The notes: generated by a model from the sequence alone, not told the origin. Shown: positions 16,487 to 42,800, counted from the first letter of the stretch. The stretch is 64,000 bases of DNA from Auanema rhodensis (GCA_964057225.1 OZ059894.1:5890001-5954000); one strand, 5' to 3'. Made by a program: numbers and translations.

Positions 16487-19400
16487 TCAATCATGGCTGT
16501 CTACCCAATTTGACGGAACCCAGTGAGGTTCTGTGTCCAATCGTCGGACGATAGCTTTGAGCTCTGTTAATGAACGTTCGTAATCCGTATTCACGATAAT
16601 AGCATCAAAGAGGTGACCATATTTCTAAACAAAAAAAGTTTTGTTGAAATATATACGATTGTAATTAACCTGTTCAATGAGTTTTCCTTGACTAAGAATA
16701 GATTTCAGCTGCTGATCTTTTACATCAAACTGGCCCTGATGTTCTCGTTGTTTTCGCAGAACTACAAGTGATGGAGGAGCTATGAATGCAATATATGGCA
16801 TGATTTCTTTGATTCTTACAAGAACAAGAGACTAAACAGGATAATGTTTTTGTTGCATAGTCATAGAAACACAATGTACCTCCGGTTTCAATGTAAAAAC
16901 ACACGTTTTTCCTCGTGTTATCACATTGATAATGTCCTGTTTAGCAGTACCATACATATGCTTTTGATATTCACCAAATTCCACAAATTTTCCAGCCTAT
17001 TAAAATACCAATGTCGGGTACAACATGTTGTGAAGCTCTTTACTCTAGAATATTCCATAAACTGCTGTTTTGTAACAAAATGGTAGTGAACTCCATCTAT
17101 TTCCCCATCGCGAGGTTCTCGTGTTGTATCTGAATAACATAAAAGTTCCAAAATTCACACATTTGAAATTGGAAGAACATTCAACGTACAAGGCACTGGA
17201 CTAGCAAGTCGTTGCGTGTCAGACTCTAACAGACGTTGTCGCAATAAAAGACATCCTACACCTTCAGGCCCACACAAAACAAGTGGACGATGATGATCAG
17301 ACCGAGACAAATGATAAACTACTTCCTCATAAGTTAGCAAATCTAAATGTGTACATACTTAAGTAACAAATTGAAAAAAAAGAACTTACCCGAGTGATAT
17401 CCATAGTTAGATGTTCCTTCATCAACACTTCTTTGTATATCTCTAGCAGATTTTCGTCCCAACGTTCGAATAACCTTAACGAATCACGACTTGCATTAAT
17501 CAAAAAACAATTGACAAACCTCTGGAATCAGCTTATTTGTGGTTTTTTTTTTTGGTCGAGAATCTTTATCAATTTCTTCAGTATACATTACAACTCTGTA
17601 AAGTACATTATAACTAGTCGTATTGAATATGAATAATAATCAAATATAAATTGATCATTAATGTCAATTATTTAATATTATATACATTCTATTCATAAAT
17701 TCATGAGATATGAAATTGCAAAACATCAACTTCTTTGCGAGTTTGAAATCATTCAAATTCACGTGAAATACCTTAGGATCAAAGTTATTAAGAAAACGTG
17801 AGCTTTCAAAGCAAATATTTTGTTCAAAGTTCAGACTTTAATTTGTGTACAAAGCTGAGAAATAAGAAATGTTTAAATGATTATTTCAAGAATTTCAAAT
17901 CAAGCAAATTTGGGATATTTATTTTAAAATTTTTTTCATTTTTGAAAACTCGAATATAAATTGTAAAAACACTTACTGTTGATGGAATGAGCTGCTAGGT
18001 ATCAAACCGGCTAACTGATGAATTGTATCCTCGCCTTCACGATAAGCCTGCCACCAGTTTTCGTCAGTTCGGTTCAGAACATGGAGAATATCGCCGCGTT
18101 CAAATTTTAAAGCCAACTCCTTACAAGGAATATATTTGTCATCCTTTTAATGAGAATAATTACATTTTCTTAGTGTAATTAAGAGAGTACCTCTGGATCA
18201 TAATCAAATAAAGCCCGAAAATGTTGAATTGTAGCTGGTCCAGTCTGTTTTTCTTCGCCATTCTCCGTGGAAGATGCAACAACGAAACGAACTTCGCCAC
18301 TCAAATTTCTCTGCAAATCCAGGAAAAAAATGAACTTCAAGCACTAAGAATTTAAGAAGACAAAAAAATTGAATTTCGAAACAATTTTAGAAAAAAAAAC
18401 CCACCAAAAGCTCGCAGACTTCTCCAACCTTTTTTCCACGTAACTGAGTTCCATTCATTTCCAATAGTTCATCACCTAATTTGACACAAATTTACACAAA
18501 AAGAAAGAAAACCAATTCAAAAGGTTAGAAAGGACAATTCATTATGTTTTAAAGAAAAAATTAAAATTATTCTCATTTTCAAACTCAAAATTCATTATTA
18601 ATAAGGTTACGAGGTAACACATCAAAGCTAGGCTTTAACCAAGTATTTGTCGAGTACATACCTTGGCGGAAAAGCCCTGTTTTCTCAACAATTCCTCCTT
18701 GCACTACACGACCTACGATGATCCGATTATCTTCATTTCGAACAGTTGCACCCTTTAAGCGTTAAATTATCACACGAAATTCACACATAATTAATCTTTA
18801 ACAACATGCGTTGAATATAAATGGGAAAAATCTCAAGTTAAACATATAGCTTAAGATTTAAAAATCATCTTTTAATATAATTAGCTATAACTTACTAGGT
18901 ATGTGTCTTCCTCTTTATGAAATGTTACAACACGCACACTACTGTCGCTAGATGTTACATGTGGCTCGGTTGGAATGTTAACAGCATTAGAAGCAATATT
19001 CACAAGTTGTTTCTATAAAAATAAACACATCAAAACACACAAGCACAGCAACAATAAAGCTAAGATGAATTTTTATTTTTGGCAGCGTCAATGAACTAAG
19101 CTGATGATTAGCGGCCTAACTATTATTCAAGGAAATTAATGAAAAAATTATCAAAAGAAAGATATTTATTGGATTTTTCAAATATTATAATATGCTATGT
19201 ACATAGAGAAGCAAGTAAAGTGTTTTATAATGTATCTATTGAATAGTTTAAGGATTGAAAAAAAGTGAAATATTGTAGATGTTTCTTTGATAACAAATGT
19301 GTCAGATTAAGCATTTTAAATCTGGCAATTATGGCAGAGAAATATGTTGGAAAGCAAATTGAGAGCGTGCTTTGAAAAGAACACAAGACTAAAAAGAAAA

Positions 19401-25973: not shown

Positions 25974-26543
25974 TTCTGTAAAACTTCATACATTTTTCAT
26001 ATAATGTTATATTTAATTAGAATCTAAGAAAAGCGATCATTTCAATATAGAAACCATTAGTTAAAAACATTAAGGAGTGTTGATTAAAGTCCAGTTTTTT
26101 TTAATTTCTAATTTTATTTATTCAAAATAAAAACTATAAACTGATGAAGTTGAGCTTAGATGCTAAAAGTGAAAATACAACTGAAAGGAGCATTCAAATA
26201 GTATTTGTTTTTAAATCGATTAACATACAAAATACTTAAACTTCCTTATTTTAATAATTTGTATATTCCAAGTTCCTCTTCACTAATTATTTCATTTATT
26301 TCAAATTTTTATTTAAACTTTTCGATTCTTATCTCAAATGTAAAACATCAAGTTCTGAACTATATTATGGCGGAAATGATATGAGTGCGGTTAAACAAGA
26401 TGTGTTTGTGCTTATCACTGTAAAAACAATTTAATTTTTAATTTTTATTATAATTTGATGTAATTATTCAAATAAATAATTGTTTAATATGACGTGATTC
26501 AGAATATGACGTGTTTCTTCTATTACGACATTGCATGTGAATG

Positions 26544-26610
26544 TTGTGCAATCGCTATTATATCAACAAAAATATAAAAAGAGAAGAGAAGATAAGAGAA
26601 GGAGTATAGA
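26544..26610 (+). promoter_or_regulatory. TTGTGCAAT (C/EBP-like) site plus GAGTATA TATA-like box upstream of copy 1; the same pair occurs at 28996/~29045 and 31669/~31707
   Basis: The motif pair appears in the same order in all three otherwise unalignable promoters. Confidence 0.45.
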
Positions 26611-26780
26611 ATAAATGTTGATATTTTTCTGATATTTATTATTTTCAATTTATATTCAATTCTATTATATTCTATATATTTCTAGCTTTATCTTTTTATT
26701 TTTTTTATATATTTTTTAAATTTATTTTATTTATCAATTATGACTCAAAAATTTCTTTTTTTTCAGTTTATTAAGTCAAA

Positions 26781-28476
26781 ATGTGGAAACCACTTTCATC
26801 TCTTTATAGACCAGAAGAATATTTTCACAGTACTTATTACCCATTTGTTCCCATTGAAAAAGATGAGCATATCAAGTTAAAAGATGCATCGAAACGGGTA
26901 ATAAAAGAATATTTTGATTGGAAAGGCCTTCTTTCAGCAGCAGAATTAGCAAAAATAGGTTAAAAAATAGAAATATCTGAGAATATATTTTGAATTTAAA
27001 GGTGATTTGGTGGACAAAGAGAACAAGCGAGTATTTTTTTATCATTACTTTAACTACCGAGTTTATAGTTTTCCAAGGTAATATCAGTATTTACCACAAA
27101 AGCTCAAGTTCATTTTCAGAAATGTTGCACTACATGTAAGATGTAAATGCGATGATACAGGGTCCTATCTCAAGTTAGGGTTTATGGATTGTCTTATAGT
27201 TATTATATCTGGAGATGATGTATCCATGGGAATATATCTTGAGTAACATAATATTTATAATTTTTGTTTTGATAAAAATGTTTAAGTGACGAATTAGTTG
27301 CACATAAGTGTATGAGCTACTATATAACTAGACGAGGAGGACATGTACAGTCACATCATGATAAAAAAAGTGGATGCTCTCCTGGAAGTTCTGGAGCAAT
27401 CTTGAGAAGGTATCATATTGTTATTTTTATAACTAGAACAATTTTCCGATTTTTCCAGACATAATGAACAAAAATTACAATCAGAAATACAAAAATATAT
27501 TAAACTTTGGAAAGAACATCTTGATAAAATTTCTGTTGTTTATTTCCAAGGAGAATCTGATATGAAGAACTTGTTCAAGCAAATGTTGGGAAGAATGCAT
27601 ATTCCTATTGAGTAGAAACTCTTAATGAACTGCTTGTCATATTTAACATTCATTTTAGGAAAATAGGATTCGACGCTGGAAAACCATCTCTTAACTCTGT
27701 TAAGAAAACATATCAGGATTTACAAAGCCCATTATGCCATGGCACTCTAGGCCAGTTCCTTGATGATATCATTCAAATGGACATTCATCGAGATTGTTTT
27801 CCTCGAAAGGTAAGAAATTAAAGTTTGTTGATGAAATATATGATGATGTTTATAGGTTGAAACTCCATGTTCATTCATTTCATCAATAAAATCAGAAAGA
27901 AGATTAGAAAAACAGAAATATCCATCATTACATCCAGAATTAAAAGAAAATCTTCATGATTCAATAGCTCAAAATGATTATGAAGCTTTAATGGATTTAT
28001 ATGAAAATCATAATGTGAAACAAGAGGTAAATTAATGATTTTGAATTCAAAAAACTATTTTTTTCTAGTTTATCGATTATCTATCCGAAGTTCATCCAAA
28101 GTTAGGTTCTCAAACTTTTTTACATTATGCTGTAAAGAATAATTTGGATGAAACAACCAAAGCTTTACTTGAAATTGGATCTGATCCAAGAGTTAAAGAT
28201 AGAGAAGGAAAAGTTCCTTATGCTTATGCTGATTCTGAAATGTGTGAAATCTTTATGAACTTCCGACTAGAAAATCCATCTCGTTATAACTGGACAAAGT
28301 AAGAATTCATGTTAAGGTATTTCATTCTTATTTTTAATTTCAGATGTCACATTCCTGCTCCAATGATAATAGAAGAAGTTCATAGGAAAAAGTTGGTAGA
28401 GGATCTTGATGCTCACCGAAGAAAACGGAAGGAACATCGAAAAATGAAGAAAGAATCCAGAAAGATTTCTGATTAA
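26781..28476 (+). CDS. Vms1/ANKZF1-like protein, copy 1 (VLRF1 domain + ankyrin module; catalytic-type Gln retained)
   Basis: Nine exons in phase: ...DCLIVIISGDDVSMGIYLD/DELVAHKCMSYYITRRGGHVQSHHDKKSGCSPGSSGAILRR/HNEQKLQSEIQKYIKLWKEHL...GFDAGKPS... (VLRF1), then TFLHYAVKNN..LLEIGSDPRVKDREGKVPY..FMNFRLENPSRYNWTKCHIPAP (ANKZF1-type ankyrin and downstream segment) and a basic tail. Confidence 0.88.
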
Positions 28477-28742
28477 ACTTGTAAATACAACTTATTTGTA
28501 TTAATAAATTATTATTTCTTCAAATCTCTGTTCATGCAACCGCTCCTGATGTCAAATATTTCAAGAAATGAATTATAAATTACGTCAAAGTTTACGTCAA
28601 AAGTCACGTCAAAAGTCACGTCAAAATTTACGTCAAAATTTTACTTTCCTTCAATGAACATTGATTCATGGCTAAACCATCATTATAAATAGTAATAGCT
28701 AGGATTTTATTCAATTTATTCAAACAAATCAAATATATATTG
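27822..28742 (+). repeat. Shared 3' cassette, copy 1 (ankyrin exons, 2 introns, 3' UTR and flank)
   Basis: By eye it is identical to 30560-31261 and 33336-34037 over ~700 bp (offsets 2738 and 5514). It stays near-identical to copy 2 until ~28742/31468. Confidence 0.95.
28535..28635 (+). repeat. CAACCG...ATGAATTAT element with an ACGTCAAA 12-bp minisatellite (also 31273-31362 and 34049-34149)
   Basis: CAACCG at 28537; ACGT from 28582 repeating every 12 bp (5, 4 and 5 units in the three copies). Confidence 0.75.
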
Positions 28743-29391
28743 TAAAATATTGAGTTAAAGATTTCTGGATAAAATATTTTGTTCTTTGTTGTTGATGCGA
28801 TTCAAAAAAAAATTGAAACCGTTATTACCGAACGAAATCGCTATGCTTTTTATAGTTGGATTTTCCTAGCTACCTTGACTACTCCATTTGGAAAAGAAAG
28901 AAAAATAAATTGCAAGTGGTCAGTCATTAAGGACTGCAGATTGTCTGTTGTCGCGTGCATTCCTCACTCTGTACATACGATATAGCATTGACATGTTGTG
29001 CAATATTACATAGAATTGCAGCATAGACATGTATATGAAGAACCGAGTATAATAGAAAAATGAAGAATGGGATTCCTTCTCACATCATTTATTTTTCATT
29101 TAGAGATTTTTATTTTTATTTTTTTTAGTTTTATATTTAAATTTGTTTTCATACAAGTATAATTATTATGTTAATGTTTGGATCTTAGAAGACAAACTGA
29201 AATAGGATAATAATACAACTAAAAACATCAGAATTTTCTATGAGATATCGAAACATGAAAATAAGATATGTATTTGTATATTATTGCTCATCTGCTTCCT
29301 ATTTAACTACATGTATATTTGCTTCATTACAATTTTTTTCAGAAGCTCATTTATATATTAACGGGTTTTCTATTATACATTTATAATAATA

Positions 29392-31214
29392 ATGTCGTCA
29401 ACATTTAAAGCTAAGGTACTAATGTTTGTTTATTAATCTATTTTATTCGTATTTTTTACAGACATATGTTCCCATAAAAGAAATAGTAAATTATTCATAT
29501 CTTGATCCCACTGATCCAGACAGCAATCAACGAATAATCACGGATTATGTTAGAAAATGGGATATTCCCAAATGGTTCATAGATAATAAGCTAATTGAAG
29601 TAATATGTAAGTAATCGTAAACTAAATTATACAATGTATATAATGGAAAAATATTGATAATTTCTTTTTTTCCATTAGAATATTTAAAATATTGTCAAAT
29701 ATGTCATGACAAGTTGATAATATTATCATTTTAGGTAAATCTTTGGAAGAAGTAGATGAATTGTCTCTATTCATAAACTGTTATCACAAAACCTTATTTA
29801 CAATTCCTAAGTAAGAATATTCATTATAGACAATATTCTAAATAAAAATACATTTTTTCAGATCAGTTTACAGATATTTGCAACCGACAATACCTGATTG
29901 TAATTGGAGCCACACAGAATCTATTGACTGTTTAATAGTGTTAGTATCAGAATATGATATAGCAATGGGAATATTTAATAAGTTAGTTTTCTTTTTATAT
30001 TTTATTCAAATATTGAAAATTAATTTGAGATATTGTATTAATTTTAGACAAGAAATGATTGAGCACAAATGTATTAACATCTATTCTAAAACTGGTGGAA
30101 AAGGTGCTATAAATACGAATAATTTTCAGTTAACTCAAAAAAAGTTAGAAAGGTACTGTATATAATTTTGGATATTCATTAAAGATATTTTAATAATTTT
30201 AGAGAAATTGAAAGAAAAATAGAATCAGAATTCAAACGCTATTTATATATTTGGAAAAATCTTCTTACAAAAATTGATGTTGTATTTTACAAAGGCTTAC
30301 AAAGTCACAAAAATAGTTTGAGGAATATAATACCAAGTCATATCCCAATTGAGTGAGTTATATCATTTTTAATTCTGAGATATCAGTTCATTTTTTTAGA
30401 AATATTACTTTTAATGCTGGTAAACCAAGCTTTTTAACTTTGAAAGATACCTATGATCGCTTACTTAGTGCATTCTGTATTGGAACGTTTAGCCAATACA
30501 TAAATGAACTATTGGAGAGTGAGCTTCCGAATGGAAAACTTAAAAATGTATGATACATGAGTTTGTTGATGAAATATATGATGATGTTTATAGGTTGAAA
30601 CTCCATGTTCATTCATTTCATCAATAAAATCAGAAAGAAGATTAGAAAAACAGAAATATCCATCATTACATCCAGAATTAAAAGAAAATCTTCATGATTC
30701 AATAGCTCAAAATGATTATGAAGCTTTAATGGATTTATATGAAAATCATAATGTGAAACAAGAGGTAAATTAATGATTTTGAATTCAAAAAACTATTTTT
30801 TTCTAGTTTATCGATTATCTATCCGAAGTTCATCCAAAGTTAGGTTCTCAAACTTTTTTACATTATGCTGTAAAGAATAATTTGGATGAAACAACCAAAG
30901 CTTTACTTGAAATTGGATCTGATCCAAGAGTTAAAGATAGAGAAGGAAAAGTTCCTTATGCTTATGCTGATTCTGAAATGTGTGAAATCTTTATGAACTT
31001 CCGACTAGAAAATCCATCTCGTTATAACTGGACAAAGTAAGAATTCATGTTAAGGTATTTCATTCTTATTTTTAATTTCAGATGTCACATTCCTGCTCCA
31101 ATGATAATAGAAGAAGTTCATAGGAAAAAGTTGGTAGAGGATCTTGATGCTCACCGAAGAAAACGGAAGGAACATCGAAAAATGAAGAAAGAATCCAGAA
31201 AGATTTCTGATTAA
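29392..31214 (+). CDS. Vms1/ANKZF1-like protein, copy 2 (degenerate catalytic loop; probable pseudo-enzyme, ORF intact)
   Basis: Ten exons in phase: MSSTFKAK/TYVPIKE.../...FTIPK/...DCLIVLVSEYDIAMGIFNK/QEMIEHKCINIYSKTGGKGAINTNNFQLTQKKLER/EIERK..IWKNLL../NITFNAGKPS...KLKN/ followed by the identical ankyrin exons. Confidence 0.82.
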
Positions 31215-31468
31215 ACTTGTAAATACAACTTATTTGTATTAATAAATTATTATTTCTTCAACTTTCTGTTCATGCAACCGCTCCTGATGTCAAATATTTC
31301 AAGAAATGAATTATAAATTACGTCAAAGTTTACGTCAAAGTTTACGTCAAAAGTCACGTCAAAATTTTACTTTCCTTCAATGAACATTGATTCATGGCTA
31401 AACCATCATTATAAACAGTAATTGCTAGGATTTCATTCAATTTATTCAAACAAATCAAATATATATTG
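30560..31468 (+). repeat. Shared 3' cassette, copy 2
   Basis: Direct repeat of 27822-28742. Differences appear only in the 3' flank: a few SNPs and 4 rather than 5 ACGT units. Confidence 0.95.
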
Positions 31469-31850
31469 ATTTAATTTCGATAATTTGTAGAAAATAGTAT
31501 CAATCAAGAATAAATTATTGTACATCATTTGTTAAAATGACAACTACTGATTGATATCAGAAGATGTTTCATAATTTCCTTTCGGTGGTTTCTACTGCGA
31601 ACGTTTCTATTATGATTCATCAATAGAGAACCCATGTTTGCCTAGTTTTTCACCATGACATCATGCGATTGTGCAATCTTGCATTGGTATTTAGCCATAG
31701 CAAGGGGAGTATATATAGGATTTTGAAAATGAATGAATTAACTAACAATACAAATGAAAGTAATCTTTTCTTTTCTATATGAATTATATTTTTCTTTTTT
31801 GTTTATATTAATTATATAATATTATAAACTTTTTCAGTTATCTGTATATA

Positions 31851-33990
31851 ATGTCGATAATAAAATCATCCATCAGCAATCCGGTAATAATTAATTTTTA
31901 AAACTTATTCCTAATATATACATTAATGGTTTTAATAACTTCCTTACTTTTAGAAGCACGAACGCTTTAATAGCGATATATTTGATCATTGCTTGCTTCT
32001 TGGGCCTGAAGAATCTTGTAGATATCTCGGCAATTATACAATTTTAAGAACATACAAGAAAAAGTTCGATTTCTTGAAACCAGAGATATTATTTCAATCT
32101 GGTAAGTACATAAAATTATATATATATATATATATATTATGATTAGTGATTTGAAGTATAGTTTATATCAAACAATTATTTTAGGAAAAAAGGATAATTA
32201 TGGTAATGAAGTAGAATTTCTTTATAATAATGCAGATCAAAATATGTATAGTATTCCTAAGTAAGTATTCAATATTATAAAAAAAAAGAGAAATGATCAA
32301 GTTTAATATAAAAATTTTTTTAGAGCAATTCTCTCTCACACAATTCGAGACTATTCTATTAAAGACCCCTCAGAACCTAATGTTTTCATCGATTGTTTAT
32401 TATTTATGATATCAGGAAATCATGTAGCTATGGGATGTTATATTCAGTAAGTTAATTACATAGTAAAAACTAATTTTTTAAAATTGCTTTTAGTGTTAAA
32501 AAGTATTTCAAAAATGTTTTTAAGCAATATAAAGTTTCAAAAAGTTAAATTATAAACAAAATATCAGCAATTGTTGTGAAAATAATTGATATATCTCCAA
32601 AATTTCTGCATATTTAAATAGTTTCTTTTCTATCAATCATCATAATTAATATAATGTTTTCTCAAATGCATGTAATTCTGTTCTGTTTCATTGAATTTCA
32701 AATCCTAATTAGCCTTTCACCAAGTTTTTATGTGCCATATGAAGAAAAAAATACGAGAAAGAAATAGCAAACTTCGAATTGAATTTACGATATCATGCTA
32801 TTTATATATAATTTCAGTGGAAAATTAGTTGCACATAAATGCCTTAACATCTATGTAGTTCGAGGTGGTGGTAAAACACAATCACGTCATGAAAGCCGAA
32901 GTGGAACATGTGGTAGTGCAGGTTCTAACTTGAGACGGTAAGCTAAGTTTAGACTTACAAGTTTAAATTTTGCTTCAGGCATAATGAGCAATTTATGAAA
33001 TCCGAAGTCAAAAAATATCTGGAATCTTGGAAAAATTATCTCGAAAGTGTTACTGTAATTTACTATCAGGGATCAGTTGAGAACAAAAGCTTGCTACGTC
33101 AAACTCTTGACAAGTACAATTTGCCTATTGAGTGAGTTGAAATAACAAGATTCATAGAAAACCATAATATTGCTTTAGGAAATTTTCGTTTGATGCTGGA
33201 AAGCCTGGTTATACATCACTGAAAGAAGCTTACAACCGTTTACTCGTTCCTAATTCTCATGGAAAAATAGAAAATTATCTCCAAGATGTTCTTGATGATA
33301 AAATATTCCTAAAGAAATATAAGGTAAAAAATTAAAGTTTGTTGATGAAATATATGATGATGTTTATAGGTTGAAACTCCATGTTCATTCATTTCATCAA
33401 TAAAATCAGAAAGAAGATTAGAAAAACAGAAATATCCATCATTACATCCAGAATTAAAAGAAAATCTTCATGATTCAATAGCTCAAAATGATTATGAAGC
33501 TTTAATGGATTTATATGAAAATCATAATGTGAAACAAGAGGTAAATTAATGATTTTGAATTCAAAAAACTATTTTTTTCTAGTTTATCGATTATCTATCC
33601 GAAGTTCATCCAAAGTTAGGTTCTCAAACTTTTTTACATTATGCTGTAAAGAATAATTTGGATGAAACAACCAAAGCTTTACTTGAAATTGGATCTGATC
33701 CAAGAGTTAAAGATAGAGAAGGAAAAGTTCCTTATGCTTATGCTGATTCTGAAATGTGTGAAATCTTTATGAACTTCCGACTAGAAAATCCATCTCGTTA
33801 TAACTGGACAAAGTAAGAATTCATGTTAAGGTATTTCATTCTTATTTTTAATTTCAGATGTCACATTCCTGCTCCAATGATAATAGAAGAAGTTCATAGG
33901 AAAAAGTTGGTAGAGGATCTTGATGCTCACCGAAGAAAACGGAAGGAACATCGAAAAATGAAGAAAGAATCCAGAAAGATTTCTGATTAA
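31851..33990 (+). CDS. Vms1/ANKZF1-like protein, copy 3 (best-conserved VLRF1 loop)
   Basis: Ten exons in phase: MSIIKSSISNP/.../...MYSIPK/...DCLLFMISGNHVAMGCYIH/GKLVAHKCLNIYVVRGGGKTQSRHESRSGTCGSAGSNLRR/HNEQFMKSEVKKYLESWKNYL../KFSFDAGKPG.. followed by the identical ankyrin exons. SAGSNLRRHNE matches the VLRF1 SAGxxLRRYNE signature. Confidence 0.88.
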
Positions 33991-34149
33991 ACTTGTAAAT
34001 ACAACTTATTTGTATTAATAAATTATTATTTCTTCAAATCTCTGTTCATGCAACCGCTCCTGATGTCAAATATTTCAAGAAATGAATTATAAATTACGTC
34101 AAAGTTTACGTCAAAATTTACGTCAAAAGTCACGTCAAAAGTCACGTCA
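33336..34149 (+). repeat. Shared 3' cassette, copy 3
   Basis: Direct repeat of copy 1. Similarity ends at the end of the ACGTCAAA minisatellite. Confidence 0.95.
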
Positions 34150-36383
34150 TAAATCTAAAAAATTACTTTTTTTATATATATTTTTTGAATAGTATAATAT
34201 GAACCTTCTCCCCACTATATTTATAGAATTTATATTTCAATTTTAGACCTAATGAGTAATCTAAACAACCGATGGAAATACATGTTCATCTATGATTATG
34301 TAGAACCAAGGACTAAAGATTATTTAAAGGATAAATGTATTTGCTGTACTGAGTAATTATTTTATAAGCAATTATTTACTATATAGACCAGTAATGCTAG
34401 GAGAAAACCCAAATAGCAACAAGTTAACTGGCTGTTATTTCGTATTACTTGCCATTTTAATACTTTTCTTTCATTCAAAATATGTTTTGTGTGGTAAGAA
34501 CCATTCAGAAAACAAACGGAAGAGAGAGAGAGAGAGGGAGAGAGAGAATATGGGTTCAATGAAAAGTCAGAGCATTAGTTAAGACAAGAGCTGGCTTGTG
34601 CTTGTGGATGCGATAGATTTTTTGTCTATATATTCATCTTCCAACGCCATTGTTCGGAAGACCATTGAGCGTATGTTTATCGAAAAACCAAAAGAAGCTC
34701 CCAAAAATCCTTAAATTGCAGATAGATGTCAATTTTTCTCTTTTTTTTTGTTACTTCATGACTTCAAATGCTAAACCACTTTTAATGCTTGATTTCGAAA
34801 TTTAGATGAAATTGTGACAGCAGAAGATGAAAAGTATTATCTTGAAAGATCGTGCTTTCAAGAGAGAAATTATACTTTAGTATATATGAGATAAAAAATC
34901 GATTTAAAGAGTAACATACAAACTTGAAACAAAGAAAACATTTAATGAGTGAATAGCAATCAAAGCGTAAATGAAGAGAAGTTTCACAAAATAAGATATG
35001 GAAAGCTGTTTGAAAGAAATTATTCAAAAGTAAATGGATGAGAAAAATTTTTTAAGTTATTGGGAAGGTTACATATAGAACGGATGAATTATATTGGGGT
35101 TGGTACTGCACACTCCAACAAACAAGTGGATTTGAAAAACACCAGTGGTTCGGATTATCATAACACATTCAGAAAATGAACCAGAACATCAATAACTGGT
35201 TCGTAATTTTCCTCATTTAATACATAAAGTAATGTATTTTATAATATTTATTTAAAATTAATGTATTGATAAATTAATGTATTAAATTATAGATATTGTT
35301 TTTTTCTTTCAGAAAAGTAAGCAATAAAAATAATGAATGAGTTCATTTTTATTTCAATTTATTATATAAGTAGATAAAAACTATTTAGTTTTAAAAATAT
35401 GAATACTTTCCCAAATAAGAGTTGCGTTTAGAGGGTTAAGCACATTATTTGTGTGGGCAATTTTCTCATAAAAATATTTATAATAGAAAAAATAAATTAT
35501 GTATAATGTTTTCAAGAAAATTTAGCAAAAATGAAGACAATCAAAGAGCCAAAAGACAAAAAATTACGTAGTAGGAGTTCCAGAAAAATGCGGTGAAAAC
35601 GAATTTCGGCTTGACTTTTCAGTTTTTTCCGTTTTTGAAGACAAGATCGAAATATAAATTAACTGCTTGACATGGGCTACTGGACGGTTGAATTTGTTGC
35701 TCGTGAAAACACAGCAAAATATGGAAGTCATCGGAATTCAAATTACACAACTAAATTGGCAGAAAATTTGGATGAATTAATAGTCCAAGACGAGAAAAAA
35801 AATTAGACTTGCATAGCAGTTGTTCAAATGTTGAACTGATTTAAGCTGGTGGCCAAGTGAGCAACGGAATTCTGCCCCCATGGGCTCCGTTTTACACAAT
35901 TAAAACACAGAGGACAGAGAAGCAGAGAATAAGAGATGGAAGATTTTCAAAACGAGTTGCCTAAACGATGAAGAAGAGTATATTGCTAAAAGGGGTGTTG
36001 GGAGAGAAACAATAGAAGAAGAAAACATAAATATTTTCAAACATTCTGAATCGGTACTATACTTAAAGAGTGTTTAACAAAGAATGAGAAAGAATGAGCT
36101 GTATTTTTGTTTCATGATTATAAGATGACTAGAGATGTTGGAAATATCATTTGAAACAAAATCGAAAAGAGAGGAAGAAACACATAACATTTGGATTTAA
36201 CTATGACTCTTGGGAATAAACATATAACGTTAATAGAAGATAAAAAAGAAGATGTTGTATTTAGAAAGATTTAAAACAAAAAAGATTGAAGTTGGTAGTA
36301 ATAGTATATACAAAGAAAAAGAAAAGTATAGAAAATTCTTCAACTTTGAGCTTTCCTTCCCTTTTCAGCATTGTAAAATAAAT

Positions 36384-37496: not shown

Positions 37497-39819
37497 TTAC
37501 TGCGTAATGTATTTACCTTGAGGTGTTCTTTGTATACTTGAAGTGATTAGAAAAGCTGAAAGAAAATGCTTTTTAGAAAACGTATATCAATCCAACATAC
37601 CAAGGAAAGGGAAGATCGAAGTAATGATAAACATCCAATTATAGCCTATAGATGGTAAGTAATATTGAGATACAGCTGCTAATAATACACCACTGAGAGT
37701 CTAAGAATACAAACATATTTTTAAAAATAAATAAAAAATCGCACCGTTGAGAATGTTAAAAATCCATAGTTAGACGCTTTAAACTTAGAGCCAAAACATT
37801 TTACAGTTGCAGTAATGAACAGAGCATGAGTTGCTCCCATACAAGTAAAAATTCCACAAAGCTATAAGGCGAAGTGTTACATAAATCTGATTCTCAAAAT
37901 CTTGGCACATACCCAAATCAAATAGAAAACTTTTCCGAAGGAATGAATCATGGGCATAGTAAAAAGGAAAATAGAAGCTATACATGTAGCAGTGGAGACA
38001 GCAAACTATACAAAGTTTAATTTCAAAAAACTGAATATATGATCTTACTTGAAAATTGGTTTTATCAGTTATATAACCCCAAGTAACTCTTGCAATCGCG
38101 TTTACTACGGAACCGATACTGAAGGCATTGGCAAGGAAGAAGTCATCATCAATAAAGGTTTCACCGTAAGTCTGAAAGAAAAGAATAGTGTAGGGGGTAT
38201 GATTGATATGGTACAAACCTTGTATAAGTTATAAAACATGTTGGCATAAAATGAACAACAAAACAAAGCTCCAAATAAGAAGAAGAAAGTGCTCGATTTC
38301 AACATTTCAGTTGGTGGCATACTTCGCTCATTTTTACTGAAAAATGAGAAAAATCACAAAATGTATGAGTTCTTCTGCAATTGAGTAAATTTTCAAACAT
38401 ACTTTGGAATACCATCATTCTCAAATACATCGCCTTCAGAACTGCAATCCGAATCAGAATCGGAGTCAGAACCTCTTGAACGAGAACGCCGTCTTTGCTC
38501 ATTATCACTTCTTTCGATCTTGAAAAAGAGTAATAAACTGAAGTGATAAACACAAAAAAGCAATTAATAGCACCAAAGGTTACAACAAACATGCTGAAAG
38601 TATACAATCATCGAAGCAGAAGGTTATGCACAGGACACATGCAATTTGCACTATAACTACTAAAGGATACAACATTATGTATACCATTATCTCATCAGCA
38701 TTTCGAACAGGCTTATAGCGAACACCAGAATATCGAGTCTCATTTAAACCGGAGCGGAAAGATGACAAAAATTCGGACACAGAGCCGAGTCCAGATGCAT
38801 GAATCTGATGATTCAAAATAATTATTTGAGAGAATTAGAAGAATTATCATATGTTAACAATTCAATTCATTCGTGCGTTTGCAGCTAACAAAACAAGATT
38901 TTTGAGCTCACCTTCTCGGGAGGATCACATATCACTATTAATGCTATCATCTGCAGTGTGCCGTAAACCCAGGCTAGTGTTATGAATACGTCCGGCACTC
39001 GTTCCAAAAGTTCTTGTTGCAGAAAATAGCTGGAAAGGGAAAATTAATTTGGCGAGTGAGTATTAATTCACAAACCCATCTTTAGTTGAGGGAAGATTAG
39101 AAGGATTGACTAATTTTGTCTGAATTGGTGCGAAAATTGAGGAAGATAGTCCAAAACCAGCGGCAACAATTCCACTAACAACGCCAACTTTATCTGGAGC
39201 CCACTGAAATTTCATTTTTAATTATTACACTATGAACTTTCTAAGCATGGAAGCTCACATTGATAACAGTGGAAACAGCTGTTACGTAAGCTATTCCCAT
39301 TCCCAAGCCAAAAAGAAGGCCATAGCACACAAAAAATGCGTAAAACGAATGTTTAATAGCGATCGAAGACATGGCAACGCTGGACCTAATCATAAATTTT
39401 TATATTCGTTTACTTATTTCCAAGAAACTTACGTAGCTAAAAAGCATCCGATAAATGTTGTCAACCGAGGTCCTATTCGTAAATTTATAGCTCCACCAAT
39501 AACCATGGCAAAGGGAAAGCATCCTGCAATATGGTGTCAAAAACAAGCATGCTTACGAAACATACCTTGAAAAGTTGGAATCCACATTAAATGCTCCACT
39601 CTCACAGAAGAATCAGTATAATTTCTCATGTACGATGCCATATAGGGTAGCATGTTACCTAAAATATATTGAATTATGGATTAAAAAATAGATTGCAAAC
39701 ATACCAAAGGTGTGATAAGTGCCAATTGTTAAATGTATTAAAACTGCCCCAGCTAGAACAATACCTACACGAACTGGTGCAGATTGTCTATATAGAAGAA
39801 TTGATACAATATCCTGCAT
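37497..39819 (-). CDS. Major facilitator superfamily transporter, oxalate:formate antiporter (OFA)-like
   Basis: MQDIVSILLY..IVLAGAVLIHLTIGTYHTFG/NMLPYMASY..WIPTFQG/CFPFAMVIGG..IGPRLT..YGLLFGLGMGIAYV../WAPDKVGVVSGIVAAGFGLSSSIF..VNP..; the second half has YKTYGETFIDDDFFL..NAIARVTWGYITDK and ends TPQGKYITQ*. Confidence 0.9.
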
Positions 39820-42800
39820 GTTCAGTTGAGTATGAGAGAATATGCAACTGAAACATAAGATTATGATAGGAGGAGAGAAGGCATAAAAACCGTTGTTTAA
39901 TGTGGATTTGAGCAAGTTCTTCAGCCGATATACCACCTTTTCTTCACAGAAGAAAAAAACAAATGAGACTTCGTGGCCCAGATAATGTTAATTTTCTGTT
40001 TCAACAAGAATTGGCTGAAGAAACTTCGTAGTTCCCATTATTAGCACATTGTGTCGAACATTCTAAAACTTGGCGAATAGTTAGTTAGCGAATTTAGTAA
40101 AATAAACTAAAATGTCACATGATGATGAAGCGTTGCAAAGGAAAAATACTTTTTTTTATTTCAAAAGCAGGATATATTTAAAAGCATAACAAATGATAAT
40201 GTAAGAAGTGTTAACTGATATATGAAAAGTAGAAACGTCAGCTGTTATTTAATTCGAAAACAATAACAACTACACTAATTTTACGGAAAAACAGGTAATC
40301 ACAAAGAAAATGTTCTTTCCAATTTATTATTTCTGTGACAAATTGAACGAATTGATTTTTCTTGCAAATTTGACGCGGTCTATACGAAATTCAACATTTT
40401 TTTGTTTGATTTAAGTACTGCAAATTTATATCTAATTAAAATTCAATAGAAAGATAAATATCAATAAGTAAATAAATAATTTTCATAGTAAATTAATGAT
40501 TAAAATAGTGGTTTATTATTTTGTGCCTATGAAGAATGAGTTAATGAAACCCTTCCAAACGGGAAGGAGTCCAATCGATATCTTCTTATGTATGTTAGTT
40601 GTGCACAAAACTCTCAGCCTAATGTGTTTCAAAATATTATATATGAGCTAAATAAATAAATATCAAATTTGCGTGACAATGAAGATAATATTTTACTATT
40701 AATTTAATGATAATATCTATAAATAGATAATGTTTTGTTGAAAAATGTGTATATAGCTCGACCAAGATATTGGCTATCGAAAGACAAGAATAAGGGTTAG
40801 AAGATGAAGAAAACACCACGGAACCCTAAAGAATGAATAGAAGGGATATGACTAACAAAATTCTAGGTCAATCTATACTTATATGTTTGAAGTTGAAACA
40901 ATGTAGAAAATTATATTTCATCTTCACATGTTAATTGCATCAATATTTCGATGTTCCTTCTCGTTGTCATAACTAAGGAAAGTGTGATATGTGACAATGA
41001 TAATTCATTTTTATTTTAAAGTGAATATTTCCATATGATCAAAAACTTGTTTGCATCCTTTGAATTTAATAATGTATAATTCTCTCTTATAAAACAGTTT
41101 TTAAGAAAATTATGTGTGGTCGATTATTGACATAAGAGTAAACCTTAATTTGCATGCTTTTCCGCTTTTTAACAGAACAAGTAAATATATGGCAAGAAAG
41201 CGGAAATCTGTAATTTCCTGTGGAGAGATTGTGGAAGTCAATTAATAGGACATGCATAAGATTCAAATTATACAACATGTACCCTCCCTTTACTACGTCT
41301 CACTTCAGCTCAACATGTAAGCTTTACTGTGTTTTTATTTAAAAAAACGAAAAAGAGAAAGAATAAGGAAAGTTAAACAACTGAAGTGAAGAAACATATA
41401 AAGAATACTTGAAAAGAAGAAATGAATACTAATTTGCCTGTTGAATATTGGACAAGACCACCCATTATCATTTTCAAACAACCGCTCTTTCAAACATTTT
41501 TGAAAAAATGAGTTGTTTTTTTACTATTTTGTTCACGAGAACCGGTGTCGAACAATTAATCCTCATTCTTTTGGTATAATATGTTAATCAAATAAATTTG
41601 TAACCTTGCATACTTTTCCCATGAAAATAATTTTAATATTTTCAACATCTTCAACATTTTCCAATGAAGCCTAATAAAATTTTGATGAATACGTTGATTT
41701 TGAAACAGATTAATTTGTTTATACGACTTCTTCGAAAATTAGTTTAAGTGGACTATTTGGTGAATATTCGTACTTTTTCCTTGATATTCATATACCAAAC
41801 AAGATATAAAACTGAGTTTTTTGGCTATATTTCAGCTGCTTCAATAATAGAAAATTAGATTCTAATAGAATAATAGTTTCATTAAGAATTCATGAATCTG
41901 AATTCTGGTATCATTATGTCAAAATTTCTACACATTGAGCTCTTTTAGAACTCGTGAGAAACGAACGTATGCTCTATTAGTAGTTATATTCATATGATTA
42001 TATTGATTTATCTATTCATCTTTTACGATAACTATGATATTTTCATTTAATTCACCTCTACATTATTTTATATTCTTTATTAAAATTATACTCGAGTAAT
42101 AGCTTGAAGAAGGAGTTGTTATTTGCACTGAGATCCCTCTTGAAAGACAATGGGCATGTTAACTCCCTCAATTTATCCCTACATTTCTTCAACATCAAGT
42201 AAATTTATTAGCGATTTTTTGGCAGAAAAAAGATTTGTTCATCTTAAGTAGAAGATTAATCGAGAAATTCACAAACTGAACATAGAGATAATCGGAGGTG
42301 GCGGAAACAGCTTGTTCTGAGCTCATCGCATATCTGCTAATCCAATCGATCTCCAAAAATGGACAAGATGTAAGATAAATATTCATTCACATCCATTTTA
42401 ACTTTTTTTTATTCGTTATCTAATCTTACTATCTTTTTTTTTTCATTTAACAAACTATTTTAACAAAAATTGGAATTATACTAGATGTAGAATAGTTTTA
42501 CTTAATAATGGAGCATAGATTCATCTTTTTGCCAAGTAATCAAATTATCTTACGCTGCTAACACTCACTATTTCTTTCCATTTGGGTTTTGAGTAAAATT
42601 TCCCAAACTGATCAATTTTTTTCCCATTTTCCTCATTTTTCCTTATTTCTGTCACTTTCTGTAACCCGATTCTCTTTTTAGGTAGCATAATCTTTATTTT
42701 TCTTCAAGTTATGCAGTATTCGAATAAAGCTGCTTCAAAGATAAAAATGCTCTGTTATTTCTATTCAATCTGCCTATATATTTTTCTCAAATGAAGTTCA

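Follow-up and report, generated by a model that had tools for sequence, protein, structure and literature searches.

The 64-kb window of Auanema rhodensis DNA analysed here (the whole stretch of 64,000 nucleotides, G000:C1:5890001-5954000 in an assembly of 181 Mb and 112 contigs) contains, at positions 26781-34149, three tandem genes, g1, g2 and g3, related to the translation factor Vms1/ANKZF1. Our preferred interpretation, to which we assign a probability of roughly 0.6, is that this trio is an old tandem family of truncated Vms1/ANKZF1 paralogs with a 3' part homogenised by conversion, in which g1 and g3 are probable releasing factors and g2, along with a fourth short paralog, g4, found elsewhere on the same contig, is a probable non-catalytic binder. 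Vms1 in yeast, and ANKZF1 in humans, is a peptidyl-tRNA release factor and CCA-cleaving nuclease of ribosome quality control (RQC), and is usually regarded as a single conserved factor of that pathway.

All three genes are on the plus strand, and their models were built by hand from the sequence. As predicted, g1 (26781..28476) has nine exons encoding 445 amino acids and g3 (31851..33990) has ten exons encoding 443 amino acids, each with an ATG; g2 (29462..31214) has nine recognisable coding exons with 425 codons, all of them open. The locus is AT-rich (27-30% GC), and its introns are short and of nematode type, with GT-AG ends in 25 of the 25 introns of the trio. A repeat finder gave start-to-start spacings of 2738 and 2776 bp, in agreement with the first-pass annotation, which had described three same-strand, multi-exon genes about 2.75 kb apart. 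Exon lengths are matched across the trio (76, 120-123, 105-123, 150-153 and 145-151 nt), the three 3'-most exons measure 171, 230 and 133 nt in every copy, and the intron phases are equal. No signal peptide was seen by eye in the trio proteins, and tblastn with five proteins as queries found no decayed extra copies within the window.

Domain assignments were made with Pfam profiles exon by exon rather than on the whole spliced proteins. The bVLRF1 profile (PF18826) matches exons 4 and 5 of g1 (26.5 and 23.1 bits) and exons 5 and 6 of g3 (26.7 and 24.3 bits), in each gene collinearly (profile positions 22-60, then 62-102). Both genes also exceeded the cut-off, at about 30 bits, when the genome was scanned with PF18826, so that the VLRF1 domain first recognised by eye in these two copies was recovered by profile as well. 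The bVLRF1 profile has no match in g2 or g4; g2 aligns with exon 5 of g1 (E 5e-5) and of g3 (E 4e-4), and g4 is homologous to g1 and g3 by alignment. Exon 8, which lies in the 3' part of each trio gene, scores slightly below the cut-off with Ank_5 (25.5 bits), Ank_2 (21 bits) and Ank (19.7 bits), and is 45% identical to the ankyrin exon of the canonical gene described next.

The best bVLRF1 match in the genome scan (85.9 and 50.1 bits) falls at G000:C6:4638003-4638535, within a gene at about 4636795-4639230 of that contig (L011, minus strand) that we modelled with 15 exons and 587 amino acids, the donor of exon 10 being uncertain. Its product contains a C2H2 finger (reading CTSC...HYQSPWH in the model), an acidic linker, a VLRF1 domain with a GGAQ loop, an ankyrin module, a lysine-rich coiled-coil, a sequence like the p97-binding VCP-interacting motif (VIM; REKRALAAEAR) and a VATC treble clef (PF18716, 30.1 bits, above cut-off). 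Scores of 63 and 32 bits against bVLRF1 were also obtained for this gene. A PDB search with the catalytic exon retrieved yeast Vms1 (5WHG and 6R84/6R86, E 5e-11), the match covering the GGSQ loop. Because of its full domain set and its match to the yeast structures, the C6 gene is identified as the vms-1 orthologue, the separate canonical gene that the first-pass annotation had recommended looking for; the trio genes are accordingly classed as paralogs of Vms1/ANKZF1 and not as its orthologue. Four intron positions are common to the trio and the canonical gene, in phase as well as in place (before the exon with the DC motif, before HK, after LRR, and before IPF/IGF), which indicates that the trio arose as DNA-level duplicates of canonical vms-1.

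A five-way alignment shows that g1 through g4 have no Rei1-type C2H2 finger, acidic linker, VIM or VATC. All that remains in the short paralogs is the VLRF1-like domain, followed by the ankyrin module and a basic tail; the trio proteins end in this tail, about 40 residues past the ankyrin module. The fourth paralog, g4, was found by searching the genome with exon 8. It lies on the same contig as the trio, 2.5 Mb away (G000:C1:8430151-8431683, equivalent to L012:5152-6684, plus strand), and has at least 397 open codons in eight exons, following an exon logic like that of the trio; its ankyrin exon is 57% identical to exon 8. Searches with exons of g1, g2 and g4 found no further family members in the genome. 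The earlier statement that Vms1/ANKZF1 is normally single-copy must therefore be qualified here, since this genome holds canonical vms-1, the trio and g4.

The 40-residue loop exon of g1 gave only a chance match in the PDB. The best 150 matches in an exhaustive protein search with exon 8 were dominated by giant multi-ankyrin proteins and included neither the protein itself nor an orthologue. A search for homologous proteins with exon 8 and with the 149-residue frame of g4 returned none, within a length window of 0.55-1.75 that leaves full-length nematode proteins unaddressed. A weak bVLRF1 match (18.5 bits) at G000:C7:11178452-11181643 (L007) lies inside a single-exon open frame of 2584 amino acids and is probably due to chance.

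The catalytic loop divides the family. In yeast Vms1, this loop reads RRKQGGSQ, and R288, G292/G293 and Q295 are needed for function; deletion of S294 is also inactivating (PMC5989216). The canonical gene of A. rhodensis, our reference, has RAKQGGAQS, followed by the motif LRRYNE. In g1, the exon 4 that carries the 26.5-bit match (27287..27409) aligns with the canonical exon and reads RRGGHVQS, followed by LRRHNE; the Arg, the first Gly, the Gln and the GxxQ spacing are kept, and the second Gly is replaced by His. Exon 5 of g3 (32818..32937, 26.7 bits) reads RGGGKTQS by alignment, again followed by LRRHNE, and differs from g1 in having Lys for the second Gly. These two genes have retained R..GxxQS and LRRHNE despite a divergence of about one amino acid substitution per site. 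Exon 4 of g2 (30048..30152) is 18 nt (six codons) shorter than that of g1 and has lost the loop: a shorter, unrelated stretch with no Gln at the GxxQ position takes its place, and the next motif reads LEREIE. In g4 the loop is almost wholly deleted. The alignment thus separates loop-bearing g1 and g3 from loop-less g2 and g4. The first-pass annotation had reported VLRF1 motifs in all three tandem genes; of these, LRRHNE is present in g1 and g3 but not in g2, which also has neither the loop nor a bVLRF1 match. Its description of variable nuclease modules was too uniform, since the catalytic loop is missing altogether from g2 and g4.

The 3' parts of the trio present a very different pattern. 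A cassette of 702 bp is found at 27822..28523 in g1, 30560..31261 in g2 and 33336..34037 in g3, on the plus strand in each case, and column-by-column alignment shows zero differences among the three copies, confirming an identity that had been judged by eye over about 700 bp. The cassette begins 34 bp before the end of intron 6, runs through exons 7-9 with the two introns between them (7 and 8) and the stop codon, and ends 47 bp into the 3' untranslated region (UTR); its product is the ankyrin module and basic tail. A DNA search of the whole 181-Mb genome found exactly three copies, all in the trio. In self-blastn, the 3' parts of the trio match at 97.8-99.6% over 805-921 bp, and the 5' halves of g1, g2 and g3 give no match with one another, in line with the earlier observation that these halves share intron positions and yet can hardly be aligned as DNA.

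The ends of the identical tract depend on the pair of genes compared. On the 5' side, identity between g1 and g3 begins at 27807, the junction of exon 6 and intron 6, and identity with g2 begins at 27822. On the 3' side, the likeness of g1 and g2 reaches 28742 at 93%, the other endpoint is at about 28640, and g3 parts from the other copies after about 34150; the number of repeats in the 3' flanks also differs between copies. Composition gave no sign of GC bias in the converted tract (0.283, versus 0.255-0.317 in the 5' parts). An AATAAA is found at about 28505, and the perfect tract ends at 28523, some 15 nt farther on and near the expected poly(A) cleavage site, a proximity that is probably coincidental. 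Just beyond, g2 alone differs at 28524 and 28526 only, after which identity resumes to about 28601.

The most likely source of the 3' identity is gene conversion or unequal exchange among the tandem copies, which would have been recent and probably happened more than once. We favor this explanation because the cassette, which is identical across two introns and UTR sequence as well, has a synonymous divergence (dS) of 0 beside a dS of at least 1.1 in the 5' parts, because the tract endpoints differ between gene pairs, and because the ankyrin module of unconverted g4 is just 46-57% identical to that of the trio. Since the tract ends where homology ends, the boundary would be self-perpetuating and need not reflect selection.

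The heads of the three proteins are far apart. Identity within the trio is 28-34% over the 5' part of the protein and 37-45% over the VLRF1 core (45% between g1 and g3, 38% between g1 and g2, and 37% between g2 and g3), and the ankyrin module is 100% identical in each of these pairs. Against g4, the trio is 26% identical in the VLRF1 core and 46% in the ankyrin module, and against the canonical protein 23-32% and 36%, respectively. For the VLRF1 module, pairwise comparison of the trio genes by the Nei-Gojobori method gave pS of 0.58-0.71, a saturated dS of 1.1-2.1, and a nonsynonymous divergence (dN) of 0.47-0.59; the resulting dN/dS of 0.28-0.50 leans toward the upper side as dS is saturated. 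In the cassette, dN and dS are both 0. A maximum likelihood tree of the VLRF1 core grouped the trio together with weak support and gave the longest branch to g2. These values identify the trio heads as old duplicates under purifying to relaxed constraint, with no indication of pervasive positive selection. The expansion with a homogenised tail and divergent VLRF1 heads was thus correctly recognised in the first-pass annotation (cassette dS of 0, VLRF1 core 37-45% identical), but the accompanying proposal of a diversifying catalytic domain was not borne out, dN/dS being about 0.3-0.5 for the paralog pairs, with no sign of diversifying selection.

The status of g2 is more complicated, and the original description of three intact genes does not extend to it. 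No ATG is present in frame in its first recognisable coding exon, which starts at a splice acceptor (29461/29462). Upstream, at 29392..29416 on the plus strand, is a vestigial start exon of 25 nt, homologous to the start exon of g3, which encodes M-S-S-N-I followed by a stop at codon 6 and is in the wrong phase. Both this vestige and the g3 start exon open with ATGTCG (ATGTCT in g4), and an acceptor-like TTTTTTTCAG is present at 29335-29344, 47 nt 5' of the vestige. A candidate alternative start exon has its ATG at 29241 and a phase-0 donor at 29270. The remainder of the gene is in good order: 16 of its 16 splice sites are canonical, and its unique coding part, 741 nt, is free of stops. In simulations with AT-biased substitutions, a frame of this length stayed open with a probability of 0.32 at 0.02 substitutions per site, 0.065 at 0.05 and 0.0075 at 0.10. 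Because the frame is stop-free although its dS from either of the other trio genes is 1.1 or more, the splice sites are canonical, and the promoter module described below has been kept, g2 has evidently been maintained as a protein-coding gene for nearly its whole history. Either its start was lost very recently or the start lies elsewhere.

The regions upstream of the trio are unalignable except for one short block. The sequence TTGTGCAAT occurs exactly in front of each trio gene, with 180-400 bp between it and the ATG (in g2, the vestigial one), and is followed by the TATA-like element GAGTATA after 49 nt in g1 (module at 26544..26608), 40 nt in g2 (28996..29051) and 29 nt in g3 (31669..31713), always on the plus strand. 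The window contains four copies of the 9-mer, where 1.06 would be expected. The combination TTGTGCAAT-N(25-55)-GAGTATA has three occurrences in the 181-Mb genome, all of them at the promoters of g1, g2 and g3, and the reversed control has none. An exact TTGTGCAAT also precedes g4: it lies at L012:4455, and 240 bp separate it from a candidate ATGTCT start at L012:4695; upstream of canonical vms-1 there is none. We take TTGTGCAAT to agree with the classical C/EBP-type basic leucine zipper (bZIP) consensus. Because all three genes have kept this private module with its bZIP-type sites, co-regulation of the trio is probable.

A second set of motifs lies just beyond the poly(A) signal of each gene. 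ACGTCA, a half-site of the cyclic AMP response element (CRE), is arrayed at an exact 12-bp spacing five times at 28582..28635 (3' of g1 and 5' of g2), four times at 31320..31361 (3' of g2 and 5' of g3) and five times at 34096..34149 (3' of g3, with no paralog following), all on the plus strand. These arrays hold 14 of the 24 ACGTCA motifs of the 64-kb window. Two TGACGTG motifs precede g1 (26490-26513), and ACGTG/ACGTCA motifs precede g4. The arrays may be enhancers of the next gene downstream. Judging from the motifs, the trio is probably under shared, family-specific control, which is perhaps stress-responsive. There is a weak hint of expression in four sequencing runs, guessed to be RNA, which contain 35-39% of the sampled 31-mers of 26700-34200, roughly what the exons of two trio genes plus the words of the shared cassette would contribute. 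In three samples of one study, under a second organism label, the shares of the locus 31-mers were 0.83, 0.37 and 0.07, which could represent variation in coverage or in presence and absence.

The surroundings of the trio were inspected by eye in open reading frame (ORF) translations. One exon at 16921-17151 on the minus strand is guanylate-kinase-like, and several exons at 37785-39936, also on the minus strand, resemble a multi-pass transporter of the major facilitator superfamily type. A (GA)n microsatellite is located at 34515-34550, about 0.5 kb 3' of g3.

The preferred interpretation can be put as a sequence of events. Duplication of canonical vms-1 at the DNA level would have led to three tandem truncated paralogs, stripped of the Rei1-type zinc finger at the N terminus and of the p97-binding VIM and the VATC at the C terminus. 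Divergence of the 5' modules would be of long standing and would have proceeded under selection ranging from purifying to relaxed, and the last 700-900 bp of each trio gene would have been overwritten very recently, probably repeatedly, by conversion or unequal crossing-over, with concerted evolution halting where homology halts, at the junction of exon 6 and intron 6. The products of g1 and g3 would then probably be active, p97-independent factors that release or cleave peptidyl-tRNA on the 60S subunit and that may back up or specialise VMS-1. Without the catalytic loop, g2 and g4 would probably encode non-catalytic A-site binders, pseudoenzymes serving as competitors or regulators, and g2 was possibly inactivated very recently by loss of its start codon. 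In a review that cites the cryo-EM work, Vms1 is described as contacting the 60S subunit through its release-factor-like domain, its zinc finger and its ankyrin domain (PMC7026593); the short paralogs retain two of these three parts, the release-factor-like and the ankyrin.

Several points weigh against this interpretation. Loss of the third contact, the zinc finger, may weaken binding to the 60S subunit. At the position of yeast G293, g1 and g3 have His and Lys, and the Arg is separated from GxxQ by one residue fewer than in the canonical protein; catalysis by g1 and g3 is not assured, because a one-residue deletion in the loop (delta-S294) kills yeast Vms1 (PMC5989216). The saturated dS makes our dN/dS values rough, and positive selection at specific sites may have occurred. 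Finally, polishing of the assembly could have erased a few real differences among the cassette copies.

The paralogs could instead be redundant vms-1 duplicates in decay, functionless or nearly so, with g2 already dead and the 3' identity a mechanical by-product of conversion. The absence of both start codon and catalytic loop from g2 would fit such a history, as would the loss of three parental domains from the paralogs and a dN/dS above that expected of a core translation factor. We nevertheless consider decay unlikely, given that the ORFs of g1 and g3 are complete, that all 25 trio introns are GT-AG, and that g1 and g3 have kept their catalytic motifs despite saturated synonymous divergence. 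An AT-rich frame of 741 nt, moreover, cannot remain open past about 0.05 neutral substitutions per site, and the promoter module is conserved amid upstream DNA that is otherwise unalignable. Still harder to accept is that the tandem genes are very young, having been triplicated recently and then hyper-diversified in a targeted way within their 5' modules, or that an assembly artefact copied one 3' end onto three genes. The absence of any difference over 702 bp in three copies is extreme and gives these ideas their appeal. However, divergence in the 5' parts has reached saturation at introns, promoters and synonymous sites alike, which speaks for age rather than targeted mutation, and neither a triplication nor an artefact accounts for conversion endpoints that are specific to gene pairs or for repeat numbers that differ in the 3' flanks. 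An artefact is also unlikely because the cassettes have unique flanks on one contig of 24.7 Mb, with no extra haplotig copy in the genome DNA search, and because eight DNA runs from two studies contain 94-96% of the sampled 31-mers of 26700-34200. Taken together, we regard triplication or artefact as scarcely credible.

A role in genetic conflict, toward which the first-pass annotation leaned, is a further alternative of small probability. Under this hypothesis, g1, g3 or both would be toxic tRNA 3'-CCA nucleases or translation-shutdown effectors, directed against pathogens or acting as a selfish toxin, and g2 would be an antidote competing for the ribosomal site through its ankyrin module. 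Enzyme-like and loop-less copies do adjoin one another and carry an identical ribosome-contact module; the loop-less ORFs have been maintained, and g2 retains the family promoter module. Among the paralogs, change is faster in the VLRF1 domain than in the ankyrin module, whereas the strong conservation of the canonical catalytic exon would suggest the opposite, and bZIP-type promoter sites are common in stress and immune genes. Opposed to this are a dN/dS well under 1 (a mild argument), a g2 model with no usable start codon, a loop-less g4 situated 2.5 Mb away and linked to no "toxin", and flanking genes that look like ordinary housekeeping genes. We therefore find a toxin and antidote arrangement improbable. 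The same low expectation applies to its broader form, in which g1 and g3 on the one hand and g2 and g4 on the other would make up an enzyme and pseudoenzyme set whose members are kept in competition for the same ribosomal site by continual homogenisation of the basic tail and ankyrin module. Such a set might serve as a defence that shuts down translation or cleaves tRNA and can be switched, or as a toxin with its antidote.

Comparison with known systems places the old-paralog interpretation between several precedents. Like Vms1/ANKZF1, g1 and g3 have an eRF1-like VLRF1 domain with an Arg...GxxQ loop, followed by an ankyrin module. The short paralogs differ from Vms1/ANKZF1 in having no finger, acidic linker, VIM or VATC, and their VLRF1 core is only 23-32% identical to that of the canonical protein. 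In g1 and g3, His or Lys takes the place of G293 in a loop one residue shorter; g2 and g4 have no loop, and the trio is tandem and multi-copy. For the loop-less forms the nearest parallel is Dom34/Pelota, an ancient and universally present release-factor paralog of eRF1 that has no catalytic GGQ and acts on 80S ribosomes together with Hbs1 and ABCE1. As in that case, g2 and g4 are paralogs with a release-factor fold in which the catalytic Gln loop was lost and the ORF maintained, and by analogy a non-hydrolysing A-site binder is conceivable for both. Unlike Dom34, they are lineage-restricted and derived from Vms1. The cassette itself resembles other instances of partial gene conversion between tandem duplicates, with a sharp identical block that includes non-coding DNA, ancient divergence beside it, and pair-specific endpoints. 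It differs in that three copies have been homogenised together and that the boundary coincides with a domain boundary of a translation factor, so that enzyme-like and loop-less heads carry an identical, presumed ribosome-contact tail.

With the nematode toxin-antidote elements of the peel-1/zeel-1 and sup-35/pha-1 type, the trio shares tight linkage, restriction to a lineage and occurrence in a rhabditid-type nematode. It is distinguished from them by its derivation from Vms1; to our knowledge, none of the known nematode toxin-antidote elements is built from that factor. A full-text literature search found no description of Vms1/ANKZF1 paralog families, or of short or loop-less forms, in nematodes. 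Variant architectures of release factors in protists are catalogued in a comparative review (PMC6514570), and none of them is like the short paralogs. Jlp2 (bioRxiv 2025.09.04.673968) is also a release factor but is unrelated.

In the trio, a dS of 0 adjoins a dS greater than 1 within one gene, which makes it a very clean case of domain-bounded concerted evolution. The conflict hypothesis, if it were true, would represent a new kind of translation-targeting system. More generally, the four extra short copies amount to a natural dissection of Vms1, in which the head and the ankyrin module are present without the zinc finger or the p97-binding part. These copies could reveal what a Vms1 head and ankyrin module are capable of in the absence of p97, and could show whether release on the 60S subunit is subject to regulation by loop-less forms.

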